In this document: in pieces, positions 3,568-52,500 of the stretch
How the letters are laid out: every line of letters begins with the position of its first letter
How positions within the stretch are numbered: position 1 is the first letter of the stretch
DNA from: Klebsormidium nitens
Taxonomy: Eukaryota; Plantae; Klebsormidiophyceae
Direction of reading: 5' to 3'
Length of the DNA: 64,000 nt
Assembly: GCA_000708835.1 (NCBI GenBank)
Contig: DF237126.1
Span: 50,369 to 114,368, forward strand
Notes under the pieces: model-generated
Database searches by the model: none
What the model was told of the DNA's origin: nothing
The model's input: the letters and a program-made list of their open reading frames with translations, nothing else
Position numbers and translations under genes: made by a program

Positions 3568-4857
3568 GTACAATTGTCCTTGGACTGAGTCTGCAGCAAA
3601 TAGATTGTTCTGGCAGCAAGGCGTAGGTATCTTGACAAAGTAATAGGATATCGCACGAGCCGCACGCCAACAGGAGTTGTGTACAGGTGAGGCGCCTTCG
3701 ATTGGTGGCCACATGTTCCCAAGAAGAGATGACTGCGCTATTTCTGATGCGAACCGGAATGGCAATTTGTATGACCAAGTGTCACGAGGCGAGCAGGCTT
3801 GCTCATGGGATCCTTTCAAGCCGCAATCGACTCGGATAGTGCAACCTAGGCGCCACTGAACAGCTCTAGCCATATATAGCGCGCAAGACTGAACCACTAG
3901 CTGCATCATCCTTGAGTCATAGCATGTGAATCCTGGAGTCCGTGATCTCACATGATCTCGTTGACTGCACGCAGTGCCGCTTGGTAATTTAAGCGCGGGG
4001 CTAGCAGTCGTGTGTGCACCGTTGTGCATTTCGCATTCTGTACCGTGCTCGCGCGGCTCCTGCGGCCCGCACTGAAAGCATGTGTGTACTTCATGAATGC
4101 GCGCACCACCCGCAGGAATTCTATGCACTTGACACTCAGTGGCCGCCCATGCATATTCAATCTCTTAAACTAACTCAACGGCGCGGCTGGGCTGCCCGCC
4201 GCACCGCGCGAAAAAACATCTCGAATTAGGGCCGGCCGCGGCGGCTGAAGCATGGATTGCGTTTCGGCATATATATGATCGCGTTGCGATGTAATGCATG
4301 ATCGACGGATCGGTTGCTGTTCGGCCGCAGTTCAATGCATGCACTAAGGTTCAGTGCGCTTCGAAATGGAAATTGATTTGAAAAGTTCCGAGGTTCCATG
4401 CCAAAGCAGCACTTCGCGCGCGTCCATGCCATGGCCATGCATACATAGGACGGACCGTCATGCATGGACCGGGCCCGACATGGGAAGGACCTCGACCATA
4501 TCCTACAAACTCAGACGCGTCCAAGGATAGACTGCATGCTTTCAATTAAACAGGCTTAAGTCACTTGAATCACTACGCGTGCAACATCGTGACTGTAATT
4601 GCGGCGCCTCGAGATGCACGATTTTTGTGTCACTCTTTGGGCCGCAGTAGATCTGACTAATGCAAACACGTATGGTTGCACGGCCGGGACGGGCCGTGTT
4701 GCTCATGCAGAAGGATCGATTGTGTCCAATCAGCATTCGTTTGTTGCAACCTTATAATGGAACAAAATTGACTCGCGACGTGTCTGCAGTATTCTTTATT
4801 TTCGGCGACTACGTGACAGTTCCAGCTGTATTGAAAGCACTCGTGCGCTATCATTTG

Positions 4858-7090
4858 CTATGAGTACTCCATAAGCTTGAGCTTGAACAGAGCAAAAGCC
4901 ACGCAGATCTGCAAGTAAAGCGTAACAAGGATGCATTGCGTGGTCCCATTTGGATGAGCAGCTGGAGGCCTTCGAAGAACGTCCAAGGTGTCGTCACAAT
5001 CAAACGAAAACGTCGACAGAAGTTACACAAAAAAAGTTGACATGCGCACATTGCGAAAACCACGTTTTCCCCAAAACAAGCGTGCAGCTTCTTTCGGAAT
5101 CAAAAGAACGAGATGTCCGATAAAAGTGCTCCACTGCCCAAGGTCTACAAGGAGAGAATCGATCATGGCCCCGTCATAAAAGACTTTCGGAAACTGTATG
5201 GGTAACACGTCCGATTTTTGCTAGCCTTTGAGATACGGGAGGGATCAACCATTTTGAACCGCTATCTCAAAGAACTGGCCATGAGAAAGCTCTTGTCAAG
5301 CACAACTTACGTGCACATCAGGAAACGACGTCGTTTGCCCTACCGAAAAAGAATCTACACTCATTGCTTCAACGAGAGGTTTGTCAGGAAACCGAATGGT
5401 AGGCGACGGTGCGGTCTCGGAAGTCGTGCAATCTCACCTCCACCAGAGTGGGCAGAATGTTACAAAACACCACGATGTAGACGAACCAGGCAAGTTCCCA
5501 ATGCTGCAGTCAAATATAGAACGCCGGTCATCGACACGAATACGGTCTTTAATATGCCCTGTCAAGTCTCCAGCTTTGGCGAAGTGAGAAGAGAAGAAAC
5601 CTAGCGTTCGTATCAAACCCTGCTTTCATTGGTGAAGCATGCACGCGTCGATCTCAATCCTCTGCAGGAACGGAACTAGTGGATCTGGAGAATCTTTCTG
5701 GGGATGTCTAGGATCCTCCGTCCAACACCGGTTCAAGTGCTTTGCAACTTGCCCGAGCTTTTCTGTCTCACCTGGGAAACGAAGAACGATAGCAGGACCG
5801 CACCTACGAAGTGTAGCCAGATATCTGGGGCGCTGGACTTGTCAAGGAACCACAAGGAAAGGAAGAAAAAAGCAGGGACTTGCAGACTTTTATCGGTCTC
5901 TCCAAATTAGCACAATGCTGACTTATTTTTGCCAGCCAATCGAACTTACGCCGTTGTTGCTAGATCGAGCGAGCGTTCAAGTTGATGAGGAACATTGCAA
6001 GGGACAGCGATGTGGAACGGCTAAAGGATACAGAGGCCGTTGACCTTGGGCAGGAAGAGAGAGACTCCGGAGAAGGTCCCCAGGAACTCGGCCACAAAGC
6101 ACACCATGGAGATGGCCGACAGAGCCAACAGCCTGCAAGCAGAGTAGTGTGCATACTCGACTTCTTCCTTCAGATTTTGGAAGGATCACACAATTCGTGA
6201 CATGAACCTCTGTTGCCTTGAAAAATTCATGGAGAGGTCTTGTGAGCCCACAGCAGTTAATTGCAAGAAACGTGACGTTGTATGGAAAGCTTGCTTCAAA
6301 GAAAGAGTTTTGGGTCTGTGTGATCACCAAAGCTGTCTACAGGGGCAACAGACCCTGCTGCAACGGGTCAAGCGAAAGACGAAAATGTCTTTCAGCCAGA
6401 CTTTGCTCGCTGTCAGCTCACTTAACCTATTGGACCTTTTAAAGTCTCCACTGTGTGTGGCAGAGAAGATCAGCGGTATGTCCGGGTTAAAAGTGAACGA
6501 ACTGTTTAAACCCAGACTCACTCTGTTCGATGCCTTTGCACTTGAGGCTCTGTTGCATTGATATCCAGAGCACGCAACACTATGTTGTCCTGCAGGCCAA
6601 GCAAAACGTTTGTGTTATAGCTGGCCAGATGCTCTTCGAACCACTTGGCCAATGGCAGCTACCACTAACCATTTTCATTTATTACCATTTTCATTTCTTA
6701 CAGTGCTGAATTTGGAAATTGAATGATGGTTGGAAAGTTGCATCATCGATAAATGCTGCAGAGTTCAGTCAAGAAGAGAAAGCCGCCAACCAGCCAAGAT
6801 TGAAACCAACTGTTGGTTATACCGCAACGTTGAAAGCTGACAAAAGCTAGACTCTCAAGCACAGCTAAAACTCAAAAGTATTGAGAGGATGTTTGTGAGA
6901 ACAGTGCAAGCCCCATACTTCATGAAATGCTGATAAGTATCTACTTGCAAAGAGATGAGAAACACACGCAATTACCAACATCTTGCTCCTACAAAAGATT
7001 TCTTACCACGTCATAAAAGATCGTCAAGCTGCAGACAAGGTGCGCTGCTGTAGTCAGGAATCGAGCTGGCAACGTAATCTCCTCCACCAT
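4858..7090 (-). CDS. TMEM107: TMEM107-like ciliary transition-zone membrane protein, 6 exons, 140 aa
   Basis: Exons 7090-7007, 6589-6522, 6132-6032, 5824-5772, 5503-5438, 4908-4858 (423 nt) give MVEEITLPARFLTTAAHLVCSLTIFYDVDNIVLRALDINATEPQVQRHRTELLALSAISMVCFVAEFLGTFSGVSLFLPKVNGLYIWLHFVGAVLLSFFVSQHWELAWFVYIVVFCNILPTLVEICVAFALFKLKLMEYS. Matches TMEM107 motifs (PxRFLTxxAH, ELxGFxSGVSxF, HW..W.YI..F...LP..xE). Confidence 0.9.
5825..6031 (-). other. U12-type (minor spliceosome) GT-AG intron, TMEM107 intron 3
   Basis: 5' site GTATCCTTT at 6031-6023; branch point TTCCTTGAC at 5849-5841, followed by 16 nt ending in CAG. Confidence 0.9.
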
Positions 7091-42449: not shown

Positions 42450-43833
42450 TCAGTGCGACGGTGGGGGCCCAACTACGATTACAACGAAAAGCAAAAACAG
42501 CCCCACTACAACAATCCCAGCTTTGAAAAAACGTTCGTCAGTCCAAACATTCAAAGCCGAGTTTTCTATGCGTCTGGTTTCGTCCTCTTTCTCATTACGG
42601 GCGAATTTGGGTGGTGGTCGTGCCTTTGGCCGCTCCACGTACGATTCCATTTGCTTTTGGCCCCCCTGAATCGATTTCGTGAAGCTCGACCAGGCCCCAT
42701 CCCAATTAACCGAGTTCTTATTTGCATCTGCATTAAGAAGAGACTTTTGAAAGATAGATTTGAGCTGTCAAACTTTCAACCTCCGTTTTCTTTTAGTATG
42801 CTCTACGAGTCCAATCTCTGAACATGACACAAAGCTGAATAGTGCCACGTCAAACCAATATTTACATGTTTTTGTGTTGGAGCCTGCAAATTGTGGAAGT
42901 GAGCGTCGCAGCTAGCCACCCATTCAGTACAGCAAATCCATGTGCCCACCTTTGTTAGCTTCAGAATCCTCCGGACCTTTGTTTGAACCGCTCTTTTGTT
43001 CACATCTGATCTGAGAAGAAGCCCGTCTTCGAAAAGCTCGATTGCTGAAACAGCGATCTGAAAACTGCATGTGCGAAAATAAGATAGGCTTCAGTGTCGC
43101 TGGCAGCAACTTTCCCAAATACCGAACTCCTAGGCAGAAGGGCCCGCCACTTTTTATTGTATGTGAACGCAGACGATAACATGATGACTGTCTTGGCAAG
43201 CTTGTGCTTCACTCTGTAGTCGAGCAATCAGGAGACAAAAACGCCATGCATAGTCATGCATATGAGCTCCAGAACCAATTTGACAAAAAGTATGATGGAG
43301 GGGTCAACAAAATGAAAGCAGCCTGCGTCAACCTTAAAAAGAACGAGATATTCTGTTTGACAGCTGGCAGTGAGTAGCGGAGGAGCACCCACGTTCTTTT
43401 CAACTACACAGGATTACGGCATTTCCTATGCTAAGTAGAAGTTGGTGGTACTTTCCCTTAACATTGGCCCGTAACAACCACTACCTTGCAAAAGAATACT
43501 ACTGTACAATGAGGGCCAGACTAAGTACTGCTAGACGCTAGACTTTTTCACCAAAATGAAAGCAGTTGCAAACGAAAGCCGTAAACCTGGCCGGCGGCAT
43601 CGACATTTGACCTCCCTCACGAGCTGCTTACAGCTGCAGCAAAAACCCGAAACAGGCAGCTTAGCAAGGGAATGAGATTGCTCACTGAAAGCATCACTTC
43701 TCATCTGTCTTACCTTGGCTGCTGCAAACAAGGGGAACTGTCGATGCAGCGCCTGTCGCTGCTGCGGTACACTGCAGACAGCAGCAAAGGGTGATGCATG
43801 CAGGCATTGGCAACAGGCCAAGGTCTGTGCCAT
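42450..43833 (-). CDS. Uncharacterised plastid-targeted single-pass membrane protein, 3 exons, 170 aa
   Basis: Exons 43833-43714, 43064-42950, 42727-42450 join in frame. Transit-like N-terminus ending RRRASSQIRCE, then VNWDGAWSSF, RRIENSALNVWT, and a C-terminal TM AGIVVVGLFLLFVVIVVGPPP. Confidence 0.75.
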
Positions 43834-44112
43834 CGCAAGCAGTTGCTCCCACCTCCTCGTAGGCGCCCTTTAATTGTATGATTCCAATGGCGCCTTCCCA
43901 CACTGCCACAGTATTGATCAATCTTCTCAACGTTTTCCAAACAGCCTTTCCAATTTCTCATCGAGGTCGGGGCTTTCAGCGTTTACGACTTTAGGGTTCT
44001 AGAATTGCATTGTTGGCCTGCTGGCATTTAGATGATCTCGCCAAAAGGGGTGTGGGCGCATGCTGGGCATGCTGACATTTTTGAACAGTTCAAAGTTGAG
44101 GTAGCGACAGAC

Positions 44113-44494
44113 CAATGTTCGTGGCGAAACTAATTATTCTCGCCAATTTGATTTTCGCCAGATTTTCGCCATTTAGTGTTTGGGAACGGGATTTCACCGG
44201 CCTGGCGAAAATGGTCAGGCCGTCAGCCAGTTTTTACATTCTCGGGTGTTCCCACCGGTTTTGAAGAATCTTAACCCTGCTCAGAACCCCGTTTCTTACC
44301 TCTGCTTGTACTTTGTCAAGTAGCTCTTCTGAGAAAACGAAGAAAATTAGGTCGGTATGGCAGATTCTAGGGCCGGGACACCCTACCGGCCACAACCGCC
44401 ACTAGGATTTTCGCCATTAGTGTCATTTTCGCCAATTAGTGTCTTGGAGGTCCTATTTAGTGTATTTCAGGATTTATTTTCGCCACGAACACTG
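44113..44494. mobile_element. Non-autonomous hAT-type DNA transposon (MITE), 382 bp
   Basis: TIRs CAATGTTCGTGGCGAAA (44113-) and the reverse complement of TTTCGCCACGAACACTG (-44494), 16/17 identical. Perfect 8-bp TSD CGACAGAC at 44105-44112 and 44495-44502. Clustered subterminal TTTTCGCCA and TTAGTGT motifs at both ends; no transposase ORF. Confidence 0.9.
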
Positions 44495-45051
44495 CGACAG
44501 ACGTTGAGGCTCCGCTCCTGTCAGGGCGCCTTCACTTCCTTTTAGTCTTTGCCTCTTCGTGGAGGCTTTTCTTTCTGACAGCATTGAGCGCCGAACCCCA
44601 GAGCCAGGATTCAAAAGCTGGATCGGAAGTTTGAACTGGGTGCTTGTGGAAGGCAGCAAGAGCAAACTTGTGGGTTCTTCTACATATCTCCTGTCATTCT
44701 ATTTGAACCATGCTGGTGGTTGTGAATTACAGTTTCCCAGGTTCCTTTCCTGACCCGTTTTATCGCGCATCTCATGGACCTATTTCCAAAAATCCTTTTT
44801 TAAATGTGACTAGATTGCGTTTGCTGCTCTTACGGGGATTGTTTTACTTCTGAAAATCTCGCTGAGCCATCTCTTCTTGATTGCCTCTTGAAGCATAGAC
44901 CACTTACAACGACCCGAGGAGTGACCGGCCAGTGTGGCGGCTCAGTGATTGGAGTGATGCTTTGCTCAGGGGTTTCGCTTGAGACACTCGCCTTATGACG
45001 CTACAGGTTGCAAAGGGTCCGGGCTATCTCCCCCTCCAACTCTCAGCTGAC

Positions 45052-45497
45052 ATGATTCATCCTGACCGGCTGACACCCTTTGGGAAGGTTGCTATCTTCG
45101 TTGGCGGGTGAGTTTGAGGAGAACGAGCTGAGTGATTCTACTTTCTTGAAGGCAACATCCTCTATAAAGCTCCACTGCGATCAGCCTTTGTTATGCCAGT
45201 TGCACCACCCGGACAATCAGTCACAAAACTGTCGGGGGCATTGTCAGTGTGTTCTCTACTCTGCAATGTGGAGTATCGCAGGCAAAGAGGTCGGTTTGAC
45301 TTTCTTGCAGGTGTGTGGTAGTCGCCCTTACCACCCTCGACATCCATCGCTCGATCCGTTACAATGAGCAGCCACCCTCCAAAGAGCAGATGGCCGCATT
45401 TGAGCAGCGCATTCACGACGTACGGCAGAATGAAGCGCTGAGGGGGTTGTCGGGACTGCCAGGCCTTGGAGACAGCGAGCCATCAAATAAGAGATAA
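45052..45497 (+). CDS. Small single-pass membrane protein of unknown function, 2 exons, 80 aa
   Basis: Exons 45052-45107 and 45311-45497 (GTGAGT donor, TTCTTGCAG acceptor, phase 2) give MIHPDRLTPFGKVAIFVGGCVVVALTTLDIHRSIRYNEQPPSKEQMAAFEQRIHDVRQNEALRGLSGLPGLGDSEPSNKR. Confidence 0.7.
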
Positions 45498-45607
45498 GAG
45501 TGTTAGATAGTGCAGCTGCACAGCAAGCTGACAAAGTAGTGCGACGGCGGCATCCCCAACGTGATGGTTACAGCAGCTATTGGATTTTCAGCAGCAGGGC
45601 TCAAGTC

Positions 45608-47331
45608 ATGGCACAGGTGGTCGGACTGATCTCGGACACGCATGGTGTCCTGCTTCCGGAGGCAGTGCGGGCTCTGAGCGCCGCCACAGGGACCATCATT
45701 CACGCCGGTGAGTAACTCTAATTCCTGGTCACTTGAGCCAGATTTCTTTCGAGGTGACTGGTGTACACGTGCTGAAGTGAAGTAAATGCTGGTACCTCTC
45801 TGAGTTGCCATAATTGGATCTAGGATCAAGGCTTTGTTTCAACGCCTTTCCAGTTATGGCCTCACCTACGAGGTTGGGACGACTGGCCTGCAACAGATTC
45901 GTCCAGAAGGTTCACTTAAAGACAAGTCGTCTTCGAAGACCTTTTCGTCACTTGTTGAGAGTTGAGCCATGAATCTATAAGAATCTGGGCACAGGGTGCT
46001 GGTTCGAGTCGCTACGCTCAAACATTGAAGCATTGCATCAGTGCAGGTGATATAGGTGAGCCACGCTACAAGAGTCGGCTCAAAGCCTCTGACCTCGTTG
46101 AAGAACTTGAGACAGGCACGGGATCAAAAGTCGTCGCAGTCACTGGCAATGTGGACGACAACTGCCCGGAAACGTGAGATCCTTTACTTCTTTCTTCTTC
46201 CGCTCGAGATCATGTTTTGTAATCATGATGACTTCATGGTGTTTAAGGCTTGTTTCTGGAGCGCAAAGAAGTTACTATTCGCATTGTGAATCGATTCCCC
46301 TGTAGAGCCTTCTTCCTGATCGCGCTGCTTTTGTGGGTTTCCACAATCAGATACATATGCGCCAACTTTGATGGGTGCCCTGTGAAATCCATTATTACTG
46401 AGATCGCTCAAACCGTCTTTTGCAGGGTGGCTCTGTACCCGGCCTTCCGGACCCTGAGATTGTTCGACAGGAAGTTCCTTGTCATGTAAGCCTGACATCG
46501 CTCAGATTTCGGAGAACGATTGCCTCTTTGGTTCGATCCGACCGATCCTGGCCAAGAGTGAACGAGGACTTTCCTCTCACGGCAGTTGCCATGATTGTAG
46601 TTCAGGTTGCTCGTTGCTCTACCCGGCGCAGGTGGCTCAATTTTTTTGTTGGAATAAAGATTGGCCTGCCTGCCTGGTCGCTCCTCTGTCCATATTGTAC
46701 TCTGGATAACTTGCAGCCACATCTGCGGCTTCCCACCAGCGGTCGATCCTCGGGCTGCGGACATCATTGCGGCTGAGCATCCGGACGTGGTCGTCTTTGG
46801 GCACTCGCATGTTCCTGGGGCCGAGCTCCATGAAGGGACTTTGTACATAAATCGTGAGCATTTGTCTTCGTCCTTAACACCGTTTCTTCTTGTCAAAAAG
46901 CATGGGGAGATTTCGTACATAACTCGTGAGCATTTATCTTCTTTCTTGACACCGTTTCTTTTTGCCAGACCCATGGGGAATACAGCTCTATCTTTCCGAA
47001 CCTCATTTTTCCTGACCATCGCATGTGGTAACCCAGGGATACAACACCCTAATCGATTCTATCAACGGACCCAAACTGGCTTCATTGCCTATTGTGGACG
47101 TCTCTTTTCTTATGCCTGAGTTTTGATCCTTGTACAGCGGGAAGCGCTGGGCCCGTTCGATTTCGCCTTCCACAGTGCATTGCCGTACTACATTTTGATG
47201 GGGAGTATTGTGTACGCTTTATTAGGCTAGGGTCTTCAAACAACAAATTGATGGCACTGCCTATCAATGTGAAACTTCTGTATGATTCAAAAGCCGGATG
47301 CTTTGAACTTGACAGACCCAAGATCCGGTAG
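45608..47331 (+). CDS. Calcineurin-like metallophosphoesterase (YfcE/MJ0936 type), 5 exons, 205 aa
   Basis: Exons 45608-45707, 46047-46173, 46426-46485, 46717-46853, 47138-47331. Metal motifs ISDTHG, HAGD, GNVD, IH, FGHSH, NPGSAGP are all present. Confidence 0.92.
46843..46979 (+). repeat. ~72-bp diverged tandem duplication spanning the exon 4 donor of the metallophosphoesterase
   Basis: GTACATAAATC|GTGAGCATTT (GT at 46854) and GTACATAACTC|GTGAGCATTT (GT at 46926); similarity continues through ACACCGTTTCTT..CATGGGGA. Confidence 0.9.
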
Positions 47332-49538: not shown

Positions 49539-52500
49539 ATGATTGGCTCAAGTCTAGCTCGTGTTAAGGTTTCTTCTATCGCATTTGCAACTCCTCAGCA
49601 GCAGGGAGCAAAAAGATCCCAATCAGCGGTGCGTCAAGCACCCTACTCTGCAGTACAGTCTGGGAAGTCAGGCGCTCAGCAATTGACAACTGTAACTTTG
49701 AACAGTGACCCTCATTTGCGGAGCTTCAGGCACCAGATTATCCCAGCGGTGCAGAAGGTGCAATTCGTTGTCAGTGTTGAAAGAAGGAAGCCGGCCTTGG
49801 TTCAGTCGATTCAAACGGCCAGTCCTAGCCTGGCACCTCCTTCACCAAGAGGCTTCAGAAAGAGGGCGGTGGAGTATCCAGTTAGCACTGAGGAGTCTCC
49901 AGTGAGGAGGAGAGCTGCTGAGAGATCAAGGCCGGTTCACACACGGGGTACCGCACAGGTAGACGCTGATCCAAAGTTCATGCCTTCACGTTTCCAGATC
50001 ATACTGCATCGAGAGACATGCTTTTTATGCGTTGTGATCTCGTAGAAACTAGCATCTTAGACTTGGTCTCGTGTCTGAGAAGTCTTTCCGTTTTCCTTGT
50101 AGAGCAGATTTTGAGTGCTTTGAGAAAGTTCTGAGTGCTTGAGCCTTAGTAATCTTTAAGTTCCTGGGCAATTGCTGCATAGAGCAAGTAGATTGAATGC
50201 TCACACGAGCGTGAGGAACATTGCATCATATCTTGAGTACCACTCTCCTTGAATTCTGATCTTTCTTGTTGAACACGAGGAGCTTCCTCCTTGCATGAAG
50301 CACTATGTTTGGTGTTGAGGAGAGATCTACAACCTTGCTCGTTGTGCAGGTGGCATTTCCACCTCTTTCGAGCGAAGAAGATGTTTGGAGGCAACTGGAA
50401 GCGTCGTCAACCAGCCTCGGGTCTTCATCAACCGATCTGAAGTCTGTGGAGGCAGTCATTTTGTCAACTTTCCAGGAATCAATCGCAGCTCTTCGATCCC
50501 CAGCCACAACGAGCACCCTCCTCCTTCACCTTCTCGCAGCACTCTACGGATCGAACACTGTCGTCGCCAAGCTCATAGACTCCTCAGCCGCAGACTTGCC
50601 CCCCAGTCTGACAACCTTGGCTAGATACGTCATCACGACGCTGCCCTTTGTACCTGCTCTCTGGGGAGCTCTCCGCTCAAAGGAAGATGGTCTCTTCTTG
50701 GGGGGGTGTGAGCTGGGCCTGCAGGCCTTCCTTGGCATCCTGTGTGGATCAGCAGCTGCAAAGTCAGCGACAGCCAGCAACGCGTCGATGCTGTTCACGT
50801 TCACGGTATGTGGCACATGCAATCGTTCAGCTTGATTGAGTCCTTGTAATCTACCTCTTATCTTATACTTGTATCAGCCTCTGCTGTAGCCTCTTGCCTG
50901 ACTGGTCCTGCCGGATCTTGCTTTTCATGATGGGTTGCTTGGCTCGCTTTTAGGATTATCCCCCTCCTCTTCAATCAGACAGCAACGCTGCTCACCCCTG
51001 GTACGTCAGGAAGTGTAAAGATTGTCTGCTTTGGATCTGAGCCCGAACAAACGTCTCAATCTGAGGAGATTTCTGCCGTACTTTTGCACCGGTAGCCTTG
51101 CAATGAGTTCCTCTTCGGGAGGGAGTGCTGTCAATGATGTTGGTCACTCCGCAAAAAGAGATGATTTGTTTTTCCCAACCCTGTACCGCACAGCCTTTCG
51201 GTGCCCTAGTTTAGGCCCTTCTCGTCCTGTCTCTTGCAAACAGGACATGAAAACCGGCGTTCTCCGTGCAGACATATTTGCCTCGCAGAGGACCCATCTC
51301 ACCTGCCGACCTTTGTTTGTTACGTATGCAGATCATCGTCATGCCAATGATGGAGATCTTTGCGGGCAGATCGGTGAGCAAGCTGACCTGGGGCGCAACT
51401 CTGGCGGCCATATCGGCTATGGGGCTGCTCGAGTGGGAGGGGGCCCACGTCCATGACGCTCTGGCCCCTCACGCAGGCGACATGTGGCCGCTTATCGGGT
51501 GCGCTTTGTCAGCCGCACAAATCTTCCGTTCTGAGAGTCTCTCGGCGAAGTTCGACCCACTGCACTTGACTGCGGTCCAGGTGAGCGCACAGAAAAGATG
51601 CTTGTCGACTCAAAGAGCACGCTGTTTACGTTTTCAAGGGAATCTCTAAAAAGAGCGTCACAATCGAATTCTGCTCTGCTCTAATCAAGCAAGCTTTACG
51701 TCTTCTTGCACTTCCTTTCTGATGTTGTAGATTCTGTTTCGCTTCTTCCTTTTCCTCCCCCGTTCCGAGCTTTGCAGGAATGCTGTACGTCCGTTCTACC
51801 TGACTGAAAACTTCGTGCCAGCCGTTGCCTTCTTTTCGCTTTCAAAGGTCATGACTTGCTGACCCCAATTTGCGTTCGCTCTCAGCTGGGCGTTCTGACC
51901 CTCCTCTCCGCCGGTTGGGAGGCCTTCACCCTGATCAGCGGCGGTACGCACCTCGACGCCCTACAAGGTCAGCTGGAGGACCTTCCTTGGGGGCTGCTCT
52001 TGTACAGCGGCCTCGTCTGTGCTGGTGAGCCACGTGAAAGATTCTTCGCATACTCTGAGCTTGCCTCGAGGAGAAAATGTACTTTCTGTTCTTATGATTC
52101 TGTTTCAAATACGTACTTTGTAGGCTTCTGATCGTTTCGGCGTGCTCTGACACCATGGCTGCTCGCTCGGCGGACCCCTCTGCAACGAAGAAGCGAAATT
52201 TCCACAAGTTTCTTGACTGTACACAACGCTCGATGCTGGTCTGCTCCTGCGCGCCAAGTCTAAGTACGTGGGAAAATAGCTCGTTCTACAGCTTGAGCGT
52301 GGTCAAAAGACTTGTATAATGGCTCATCCGTTACTGTTCCTGACGCTCCTTTCCGCCCGTTCCGTCCTTGTCCAGGCCTCTGCCAGTGGGCGGAGCTCAA
52401 GGGCCTGCGCCACGTGCACGCCTCCACCGCGACGCTCATCTACACCACCATCCCCGTCTGGGGCGCTTTTCTCTCCTTCCTCGTTCGCGGCGAGCCGCCG

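Follow-up and report, generated by a model that had tools for sequence, protein, structure and literature searches.

On contig DF237126.1 of Klebsormidium nitens, an open reading frame (ORF) for a small membrane protein (ORF1) ends 110 nt before the start codon of a metallophosphoesterase (ORF2). Judged by sequence comparison, this pairing is conserved, and we think it moderately probable from the same kind of evidence that both ORFs are carried by one bicistronic mRNA in K. nitens. This reading is favoured because the pairing is conserved, because the spacer is short compared with neighbouring same-strand gaps of 2.2-2.6 kb, and because the two genes share an exon in a liverwort gene annotation. 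Both the single transcript and the mode of ORF2 translation are what we infer from these observations.

The window is the whole 64,000-nt stretch analysed (contig positions 50,369 to 114,368, forward strand). In the following list of features, given in window coordinates, relatives are metagenomic Klebsormidium loci (L002-L005):

44115..45006, + strand, region within which the deposited model KFL_001770190 places additional upstream coding exons, unsupported as coding sequence
44995..44997, + strand, in-frame upstream ATG that would give 99 aa, not conserved in relatives
45052..45107, + strand, microprotein exon 1 (ATG, 18 codons plus 2 nt), encoding the N-terminal tail and half of the predicted transmembrane helix, namely its first (MIHPDRLTPFGKVAIFVG-G)
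45108..45310, + strand, microprotein intron (203 nt, GTGAGT...TTGCAG, phase 2), splice positions and phase kept in L002-L004
45311..45497, + strand, coding part of microprotein exon 2 (61 codons plus stop TAA), second half of the predicted transmembrane helix, invariant motif and variable tail
45498..45607, + strand, inter-ORF spacer of 110 nt; the 160-nt spacer of relatives can be aligned only beside the stop and beside the ATG
45564..45629, + strand, upstream ATG with a favourable context (gtgATGg) and the 21-codon ORF it opens, which runs out of frame across the enzyme start
45585..45597, + strand, TTTTCAG CAG CAG, whose acceptor-like AGs share the phase of the exon 1 donor; relatives have an aligned TTGCAG, out of phase
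45608..45707, + strand, phosphoesterase exon 1 (ATG at 45608, DxH metal motif), 85-94% identical in relatives
46047..46173, + strand, phosphoesterase exon 2 (GD and GNxD motifs)
46426..46485, + strand, phosphoesterase exon 3
46717..46853, + strand, phosphoesterase exon 4 (GHSH motif)
47138..47331, + strand, phosphoesterase exon 5 with stop TAG

The small ORF is spliced from 45052-45107 and 45311-45497 and comprises 80 aa. Its donor is CGG/GTGAGT after 45107 and its acceptor TTGCAG/G before 45311 (slashes mark splice junctions); the TAA stop occupies 45495-45497. On the contig itself (window position plus 50,368), the microprotein runs from its ATG at 95420 to its stop at 95865, and the enzyme from its ATG at 95976 to its stop at 97699. 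The original prediction had an 80-aa ORF stopping at 45497 and an enzyme ATG at 45608 across a 110-bp gap, and all of these coordinates were confirmed. From its sequence, ORF1 is a predicted single-pass membrane microprotein of 80 aa, consisting of a short N-terminal tail, one transmembrane helix (Kyte-Doolittle value of about 2.0) cut by the phase-2 intron, a juxtamembrane motif encoded by exon 2 (TT-DIHRSI--N--PPS-EQ, invariant) and a variable tail. In the alignment, the invariant residues fall in the helix and the juxtamembrane motif, and the C-terminal 15-20 residues are the least conserved.

Homology searches for the microprotein were run with exon 2 and with the database proteins P0002 and P0003, both of which include the spliced sequence. 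HMMER matches comprised P0002 of K. nitens, P0003 of Klebsormidium subtile (88% identity) and the metagenome protein P0004, which, like the other metagenome/Logan proteins P0010 and P0011, is 65% identical to the microprotein. The exon 1 peptide is 90-100% identical to that of L002-L004, in which the first conserved position coincides exactly with the ATG at 45052 and a 281-nt intron keeps the donor and acceptor positions and the phase found in K. nitens. Between K. nitens and these three loci, ORF1 has a dN/dS of 0.06-0.09 with saturated synonymous sites (pS 0.64-0.71), and about 13/3/32 changes at codon positions 1/2/3. Because a low dN/dS is combined with this codon-position bias, matching ORF2 (omega 0.07, pS of about 0.65-0.7 against the same loci), the small ORF is, by its pattern of substitution, a genuine protein-coding gene under purifying selection and not a chance ORF. 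A word search with exon 2 gave no match, in part because of length filtering; as it also overlooked P0004, no weight is placed on this result. Pfam returned no family for the microprotein exons, P0002 or P0003. The ESM Atlas returned weak look-alikes among small single-pass mitochondrial-type proteins, for example COX6C and SMIM20/MITRAC7 (scores 0.85-0.92), which we take as leads only and from which we assign no function.

Downstream, five hand-drawn exons exactly match the deposited 205-aa protein (P0001, KFL_001770200), for which an exact look-up returned the genome record only. ORF2 encodes a YfcE/MJ0936/VPS29-type metallophosphoesterase (Pfam PF12850 Metallophos_2, COG0622) with a full-length family match (residues 5-162 of 205, E 3.7e-29, 102.1 bits against a gathering cut-off of 27) and no targeting extension. 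The metal motifs DxH, GD, GNxD and GHSH are intact, and D10, H12, D35, N68, H97, H125 and H127 are invariant in the orthologue alignment. A PDB search with P0001 as single sequence gave no match; the structures of YfcE, MJ0936 and VPS29 (1su1, 1s3l, 1w24) were found with a profile of ORF2 orthologues (E 5e-13 to 4e-9). ORF2 shares with these proteins the PF12850 profile and the invariant metal motifs, but it belongs to a streptophyte-specific branch, with 45-54% identity to liverwort, zygnematophyte, fern and conifer orthologues, and at its C-terminus it is extended by about 40 aa. For the Cryptomeria orthologue, an exact look-up gave no record.

The spacing of the two ORFs stands apart from that of their neighbours. 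In the deposited annotation, the coding sequences of the PITH gene and KFL_001770190 lie 2.6 kb apart on the same strand, and those of the enzyme and the EamA gene 2.2 kb apart, in line with the earlier statement that other same-strand gaps here exceed 1 kb. Synteny, which had been proposed as a check, bore the pairing out: the two ORFs are adjacent in L002-L005, with a spacer of 160 nt, and in the liverwort Calypogeia fissa. Flanking same-strand gaps in L003 measure about 1.8 kb. Intron and spacer sequences are unalignable between K. nitens and its relatives, yet the short spacing has been retained. The 110 nt of K. nitens also fits the published sizes of green-algal bicistrons; chlorophyte nuclear polycistronic loci have median inter-ORF distances of 212-260 nt, and the corresponding median for the remaining colinear gene pairs is 3.3-3.4 kb (Gallaher et al., 2021; PMC7896298).

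In C. fissa (locus L013), a homologue of microprotein exon 2 (E 1e-11; 64 aa aligned, 41% identical) immediately precedes the orthologous enzyme and has the same intron acceptor phase as in K. nitens. All four enzyme introns occupy identical positions in the two species, which supports orthology of the algal and liverwort enzymes. The liverwort microprotein ORF reaches its stop (L013 5036-5038) 1 nt before the donor G/GTAATT and downstream of both the annotated enzyme ATG at 5001 and a second ATG at 5022; in the annotated model the small ORF overlaps the enzyme start codon and one exon is common to both. Because the next enzyme exon has no in-frame ATG, the enzyme start must sit on the microprotein exon. 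A candidate for the liverwort microprotein exon 1 (ATG at L013 3707/3728, donor GC/GTATGC at 3792) was weak and not convincing.

If the two ORFs share a transcript, the locus would form one conserved two-gene unit in which the microprotein ORF precedes that of the phosphoesterase, and 45311-45707 would be a single exon in which the last part of ORF1 is followed by the 110-nt spacer and then by the initial 33 codons of ORF2. Translation of ORF1 would start at the first AUG, and only a minority of ribosomes would get to the ORF2 AUG through leaky scanning and through reinitiation after short out-of-frame ORFs. With few ribosomes at ORF2, we propose that the enzyme would be kept at a low level coupled to microprotein expression. 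Among the arrangements put forward in the original prediction, the bicistronic transcript appears to be the best-supported one, since both genes are real by sequence, their spacing is kept at saturated divergence and an exon is shared in the liverwort annotation; the transcript itself is not demonstrated.

Start codons are not depleted upstream of ORF2. Spliced RNA would contain four further ATGs between the first ATG and the enzyme ATG (mRNA positions 109, 135, 175 and 309, the last being window position 45564), giving an observed/expected ratio of 0.77 (P(shuffle<=obs) 0.42). Relatives have 5-6 intervening ATGs and ratios of 0.64-0.79 (shuffle P 0.2-0.4 overall). The original prediction had seen in several upstream ATGs an argument against simple leaky scanning, rightly so given these ratios. 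Both the non-depleted ATGs and the strong context of the ATG at 45564, which overlaps the ORF2 start, speak against a bicistron. The start contexts are gctgacATGA for ORF1 (gcacttATGA in relatives) and caagtcATGG for ORF2 (aggctgATGG in relatives); taken by itself, the base at +4 would favour ORF2. Four exon junctions downstream of the ORF1 stop also count against a bicistron; an mRNA with exon junctions after the ORF1 stop would be a target of plant nonsense-mediated decay.

Further observations concern transcripts and proteomes. The K. subtile microprotein P0003 (EukProt EP00243, contig TRINITY_DN1386_c0_g1_i1) is labelled '.p2', that is, the second ORF of its Trinity transcript. No enzyme orthologue from the K. 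subtile proteome that holds this microprotein was found among the matches of P0001, an absence that would be unexpected if both ORFs always shared one assembled transcript and that speaks against a bicistron. The same holds for the monocistronic leaders of the enzyme orthologue in conifer-like RNA contigs (35-188 nt, stops in all frames, no microprotein ORF) and for the enzyme orthologues of the fern Adiantum and the trebouxiophyte Myrmecia bisecta, upstream of which no microprotein homologue was found. When metagenomes were scanned with the microprotein alignment, 599 patterns matched and 0 of them were confirmed, and a degenerate exon 1-exon 2 junction pattern for spliced cDNA gave 0 matches in metagenome and metatranscriptome contigs. 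Together with the look-up of P0001, these searches yielded no RNA-derived contig for either ORF in K. nitens or its relatives, which also speaks against a bicistron.

Several of these observations would be accommodated by two separate, abutting or overlapping transcription units, an explanation that we consider possible but doubtful. The microprotein mRNA would be polyadenylated in or just past the spacer, for example in enzyme exon 1 or intron 1; enzyme transcription would start inside microprotein exon 2 or the spacer, and interleaved promoter and terminator elements would keep the spacing tight. The non-depleted ATGs and the strong overlapping ATG would be harmless if the enzyme mRNA began downstream of them, and both the K. 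subtile proteome, with its microprotein and no detectable enzyme orthologue, and the monocistronic enzyme orthologue of the conifer-like contigs would be as expected. The original prediction noted, as we confirm, that AATAAA and TGTAA are both absent from the 110-nt spacer, and took this to argue against a terminator. That argument is void because neither AAUAAA nor UGUAA serves as poly(A) signal in Klebsormidium ESTs (PMC1868727), so a poly(A) site in or near the spacer is possible. In L002 and L004, furthermore, a TATA-like TTTTATAAATAG precedes the enzyme ATG by 34-41 nt, but K. nitens lacks this motif and L003 has a weakened form of it. Weighing against separate units, 110-160 nt is too small for a 3' UTR, a promoter and a 5' UTR in series, where other gaps measure about 2 kb. 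In the annotated C. fissa model, the enzyme start codon lies within the microprotein ORF on the same exon, so that a fully separate unit would be impossible there unless the promoter were within the microprotein gene.

The original prediction also offered alternative splicing, with exon 1 joined to an acceptor ending at 45591, 45594 or 45597 so that one promoter would yield either the microprotein or an N-terminally extended phosphoesterase. These three AGs follow a short T-run in K. nitens, they do match the phase of the exon 1 donor and give the fusion peptide that had been described, and the frame is open to the enzyme ATG. We nevertheless consider this very improbable, as the in-frame junction is specific to K. 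nitens: relatives do have an acceptor-like TTGCAG at the aligned position, but in the wrong phase, so that its use would shift the reading frame of the product, and the only in-phase site there is a weak AAG/G 4 nt before the ATG. None of 11 aligned enzyme orthologues and relatives (0/11) has a hydrophobic N-terminal extension, exon 1 encodes half of a predicted transmembrane helix whose conserved partner is exon 2, and by our estimate chance alone would place a CAG within about 15 nt of an ATG roughly 1 in 4 times.

We give equally little credence to the small ORF acting mainly as a regulatory conserved-peptide upstream ORF (CPuORF), whose nascent peptide would control enzyme translation with no stand-alone protein; its position is that of a long upstream ORF, and if the mRNA were shared it would repress translation of ORF2, but stalling peptides are usually most conserved next to the stop, the opposite of a microprotein of 80 aa with a clear membrane helix, conservation peaking in helix and juxtamembrane motif, and a variable tail beside the stop.

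Three other candidates concerning the spacer were set aside. An IRES-like or structured spacer was rejected because folding is no stronger than in shuffles (MFE -31.9 kcal/mol, with shuffles averaging -35.8; z = +1.2). Read-through of the stop codon and fusion by frameshift were both rejected since the frames of ORF1 and ORF2 differ and the enzyme opens directly with its first beta-strand and DxH motif. A spacer intron (GA/GTGTTAG ... TTTTCAG) was considered because GTGTTAG is conserved beside the microprotein stop; it is unlikely, as all five introns here have GTRAG donors, which GTGTTA does not match, and such an intron would also destroy the stop codon in relatives.

Nuclear mRNAs that encode two proteins are well documented in chlorophyte algae. 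For the land-plant lineage, to our knowledge, they have been documented at very few loci, CDC26/TTM3 being the example. The pair in K. nitens probably fits the arrangement already known from green algae, if its features are compared with those of the chlorophyte loci (PMC7896298, PMC11291117). As in those loci, ORF1 is small and conserved, in many cases encoding a membrane or mitochondrial microprotein, and precedes a larger ORF2 on the same strand; inter-ORF distances are about 100-260 nt, compared with kilobases between ordinary neighbours; colinearity is kept across species; and ORF1 is often missed or mis-modelled in annotation. Unlike those loci, the pair belongs to a streptophyte alga and is known here from genomic sequence. 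In chlorophyte bicistrons, start codons are depleted, and one added ATG lowered ORF2 output (PMC11291117). This leaky-scanning signature is missing in the K. nitens pair, because observed/expected ratios of 0.64-0.79 show no depletion of ATGs ahead of ORF2, and one of these ATGs opens an ORF that runs across the ORF2 start.

Conservation of the CDC26/TTM3 bicistronic transcript has been described for both plants and green algae (PMC11291117), and the earlier remark that such an arrangement would be unusual for a streptophyte was overstated. Both systems place a microprotein ORF of about 65-80 aa before a phosphatase- or phosphoesterase-type enzyme and keep the pairing over very long distances, including land plants. 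The proteins are unrelated, with a membrane microprotein in place of CDC26 and PF12850 in place of the triphosphate tunnel metalloenzyme, and the pairing described here is seen only in Klebsormidium and one liverwort, being undetected in the fern, the conifer-like transcripts and the trebouxiophyte. It is rather unlikely, in our estimate, that the pair is an ancient streptophyte dicistronic gene that predates the split between Klebsormidiophyceae and land plants, with ORF2 translated without start-codon depletion and with overlapping ORFs in the liverwort. Were this the case, ORF2 would be reached by another route, such as reinitiation after short ORFs or an internal start site; alternatively, microprotein and enzyme would be functional partners, for example through membrane recruitment. 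A pairing that spans a streptophyte alga and a liverwort would be the second deep example after CDC26/TTM3, and a bicistron without ATG depletion could offer a test of how much of ORF2 translation leaky scanning accounts for.

The comparison also bears on the annotation of the microprotein. The deposited model, KFL_001770190, has 179 aa with an extra N-terminal 97 aa, which are unsupported by sequence comparison: neither K. subtile P0003 nor L002-L004 has anything that corresponds to this part, tblastx against relatives detected no conservation from 42745 to 45045, and relatives have no in-frame ATG upstream of the microprotein start before a stop is reached. KFL_001770190 should be corrected to 80 aa, and the liverwort homologue is wholly unannotated. 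If the pairing of alga and liverwort is true, an unannotated conserved family of membrane microproteins would come to light.

The original prediction described a two-exon open reading frame of 80 aa upstream of a phosphoesterase gene, starting at 45052 and ending at 45497, and re-reading of the sequence returns the same structure. Over 21.7 kb the window matches scaffold DF237126.1 of Klebsormidium nitens (GCA_000708835.1) with 0 mismatches, and coordinates in that record equal window coordinates plus 50,368.

45052 to 45107, + strand: microprotein exon 1, from the ATG at 45052 to the donor CGG/GTGAGT
45311 to 45497, + strand: microprotein exon 2, from the acceptor TTGCAG/G to the stop TAA at 45495-45497; total product 80 aa

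The deposited upstream gene, KFL_001770190 (P0002, GAQ84133.1), encodes instead 179 aa from a start at 44115 and has the stop at 45497 in common with the 80-aa ORF. Exon 2 (61 aa) served as query, and P0002 and P0003 were taken as proxies for the spliced 80-aa protein. Searched in full by HMMER with exon 2, 1.84 billion representatives yielded as true relatives P0002 itself, the Klebsormidium subtile ORF TRINITY_DN1386_c0_g1_i1.p2 (P0003; 117 aa, 88% identity) and a metagenome/Logan cluster (P0004, P0010 and P0011; 65% identity). P0004 (62 aa, with 12 5-residue words in common with the query) had been missed by a word-index protein search, the blanks of which are unreliable on very short proteins. 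Residues 1-97 of P0002 have no counterpart in P0003 or in the cluster. Furthermore, tblastx against the relatives detects no cross-species conservation from 42745 to 45045, and conservation sets in exactly at ATG 45052. No relative has an in-frame ATG upstream of the matching position before a stop is reached, and the in-frame ATG 44995 of K. nitens is not kept. The upstream coding exons of KFL_001770190 (44115-45006) are themselves devoid of relatives and of cross-species conservation.

Against the metagenomic relatives, the microprotein ORF has a dN/dS of 0.06-0.09, with synonymous sites near saturation (pS 0.64-0.71), and its substitutions fall on codon positions 1/2/3 in counts of about 13/3/32. 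The same substitution pattern (omega 0.07) is seen in the adjacent enzyme ORF. Comparative sequence evidence makes the small ORF a genuine gene and the deposited 179-aa model wrong; what is conserved is the 80-aa protein from 45052. The annotation is thereby corrected, and a conserved microprotein is newly recognised. In the alignment, one predicted transmembrane helix (Kyte-Doolittle about 2.0), interrupted by the intron, is followed by an invariant motif, TT-DIHRSI--N--PPS-EQ, and a variable tail. A Pfam search returned no family for this protein; look-alikes in the ESM Atlas (scores 0.85-0.92) are small single-pass, mostly mitochondrial-type proteins and serve as leads only.

The phosphoesterase begins at ATG 45608 as predicted, and five exons drawn by hand reproduce the deposited 205-aa KFL_001770200 (P0001) exactly. 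P0001 matches PF12850 (Metallophos_2; E 3.7e-29), and a profile of its orthologues matches the structures of VPS29, YfcE (1su1) and MJ0936 (1s3l). D10, H12, D35, N68, H97, H125 and H127 are invariant in the alignment, which makes phosphodiesterase or phosphatase activity of P0001 probable. The protein opens directly with its first strand and the DxH motif. Orthologues with 45-54% identity are found in a liverwort, Mesotaenium, Spirogloea, a fern and a conifer. Within the gene, a 67-nt tandem duplication (46829-46895 and 46901-46967, 82% identity) places a second copy of the exon 4 end, donor GTGAGC included, inside intron 4, which thereby gains a decoy donor site.

The original prediction called for synteny in related algae, and the pair is indeed adjacent in all four contigs of Klebsormidium relatives compared (the JGI metagenome contigs L002 and L003 and the Logan contigs L004 and L005), with microprotein exon 1, exon 2 and the enzyme exons in the same order. 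In these contigs the microprotein intron is 281 nt long, with position and phase as in K. nitens, and the spacer measures 160 nt; neither can be aligned with K. nitens, except for a handful of bases adjoining the stop and the ATG. Wider synteny is also kept, comprising a PITH gene, a minus-strand small ORF, the microprotein-enzyme pair and an EamA gene, with other gaps of about 2 kb. The minus-strand ORF (42450-42728) is 81% identical in amino acids to L002 and L003 across 93 aa, and has a hydrophobic C-terminal tail (…GIVVVGLFLLFVVIVVG) and no gene call in the deposited K. nitens annotation. Placed head-to-head to the microprotein gene across an interval of about 2.3 kb, it probably encodes an unannotated tail-anchored small protein.

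In K. nitens the two ORFs are 110 nt apart, and the same-strand CDS gaps beside the pair are 2.6 and 2.2 kb in the deposited annotation, in line with the more than 1 kb previously noted. The spacer lacks AATAAA and TGTAA, as had been observed; this absence is uninformative, given that neither motif is seen close to cleavage sites in ESTs of Klebsormidium (PMC1868727). Its predicted RNA structure is nothing unusual (z = +1.2). A TATA-like element, TTTTATAAATAG, precedes the phosphoesterase ATG by 34-41 nt in L002 (6307-6318) and L004 (1207-1218); it reads TTTTACAAATAG in L003 (6514-6525) and is absent in K. nitens.

The most telling case for a conserved pairing is the liverwort Calypogeia fissa, in whose DNA (L013) the K. 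subtile microprotein matches directly upstream of the orthologous enzyme (E 1e-11, 41% identity, 64 aa).

L013 4867-5039: microprotein exon-2 homologue, reading frame ending at TGA 5036-5038; not annotated in C. fissa

This homologue begins after ttggcag/G, in the same phase as in Klebsormidium, and needs a first exon because an in-frame stop sits just upstream. A convincing first exon was looked for upstream in L013 and not found; several copies of a repeat of about 130 nt occupy 4160-4720, within the would-be intron. The annotated start of the liverwort enzyme (P0012), ATG 5001, and a second ATG at 5022 in a strong context lie within the microprotein ORF but out of its frame; the exon extends 1 nt past the microprotein stop, to G/GTAATT, and the next enzyme exon offers no in-frame ATG before the catalytic core. 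If the annotated gene model is right, the enzyme start codon would thus lie on the last coding exon of the microprotein. The four other enzyme introns occupy identical positions in alga and liverwort. GTGTTAG is found at or right after the microprotein stop in K. nitens (45498-45510) and relatives (L002 6187-6199), and the liverwort has a good donor, G/GTAATT, at this point (L013 5036-5045); this recurrence of GT beside the stop across the three lineages may be coincidental. Adiantum, Myrmecia bisecta and conifer-like RNA contigs that carry the orthologue were examined for the pairing and did not show it; the leaders of those contigs span 35-188 nt with stops in all frames.

We lean towards a single transcript carrying both the microprotein and the enzyme, a reading on comparative grounds. 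In its favor are the short spacing retained across deep divergence, the exon that both ORFs would have in common in the liverwort, and the '.p2' label of the K. subtile ORF, which denotes a longer ORF on the same contig. The layout also resembles published green-algal bicistrons, in which ORF1 is small and a median of 212-260 nt separates the two ORFs, against more than 3 kb between other colinear genes (PMC7896298). Among known systems, the nearest are the polycistronic loci of chlorophytes and, in plants and algae, the CDC26/TTM3 bicistron; the present locus resembles them in layout and conserved colinearity but not in start-codon depletion, and the single transcript that defines them is here a prediction. 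We found no published report of nuclear bicistronic mRNAs in Klebsormidium.

Several observations count against one bicistronic mRNA. Chlorophyte bicistrons are depleted of upstream ATGs, and a single added ATG strongly cuts ORF2 output (PMC11291117), whereas ATGs ahead of ORF2 in K. nitens and the relatives are not depleted (observed/expected 0.64-0.79, inside the shuffle range). The several upstream ATGs of the original prediction amount to four beyond the first in the spliced RNA, and that at 45564 (gtgATGg) opens a 21-codon ORF running across the enzyme start. With the ORF1 stop followed by four exon junctions, nonsense-mediated decay would be expected. Moreover, no K. subtile enzyme orthologue is among the P0001 matches. 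An exact look-up of P0001 returned the genome record only, and a metagenome scan with the microprotein and a splice-junction pattern search gave no match. Two interleaved monocistronic units are the less likely alternative.

The small remaining probability is divided between a purely regulatory upstream ORF and the proposed in-frame splicing of microprotein exon 1 onto the enzyme. The latter is not supported. It could occur in K. nitens, where candidate acceptor AGs (ends at 45591, 45594 and 45597) share the phase of the exon-1 donor, but the TTGCAG of the relatives, although consensus-like, has the wrong phase, and what is in phase there is a weak AAG/G alone. Exon 1 would contribute only half of the helix; neither the fused N-terminus nor any hydrophobic N-terminal extension occurs in the orthologues aligned. 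In the liverwort, one exon would serve both proteins in a different manner, through overlapping reading frames.
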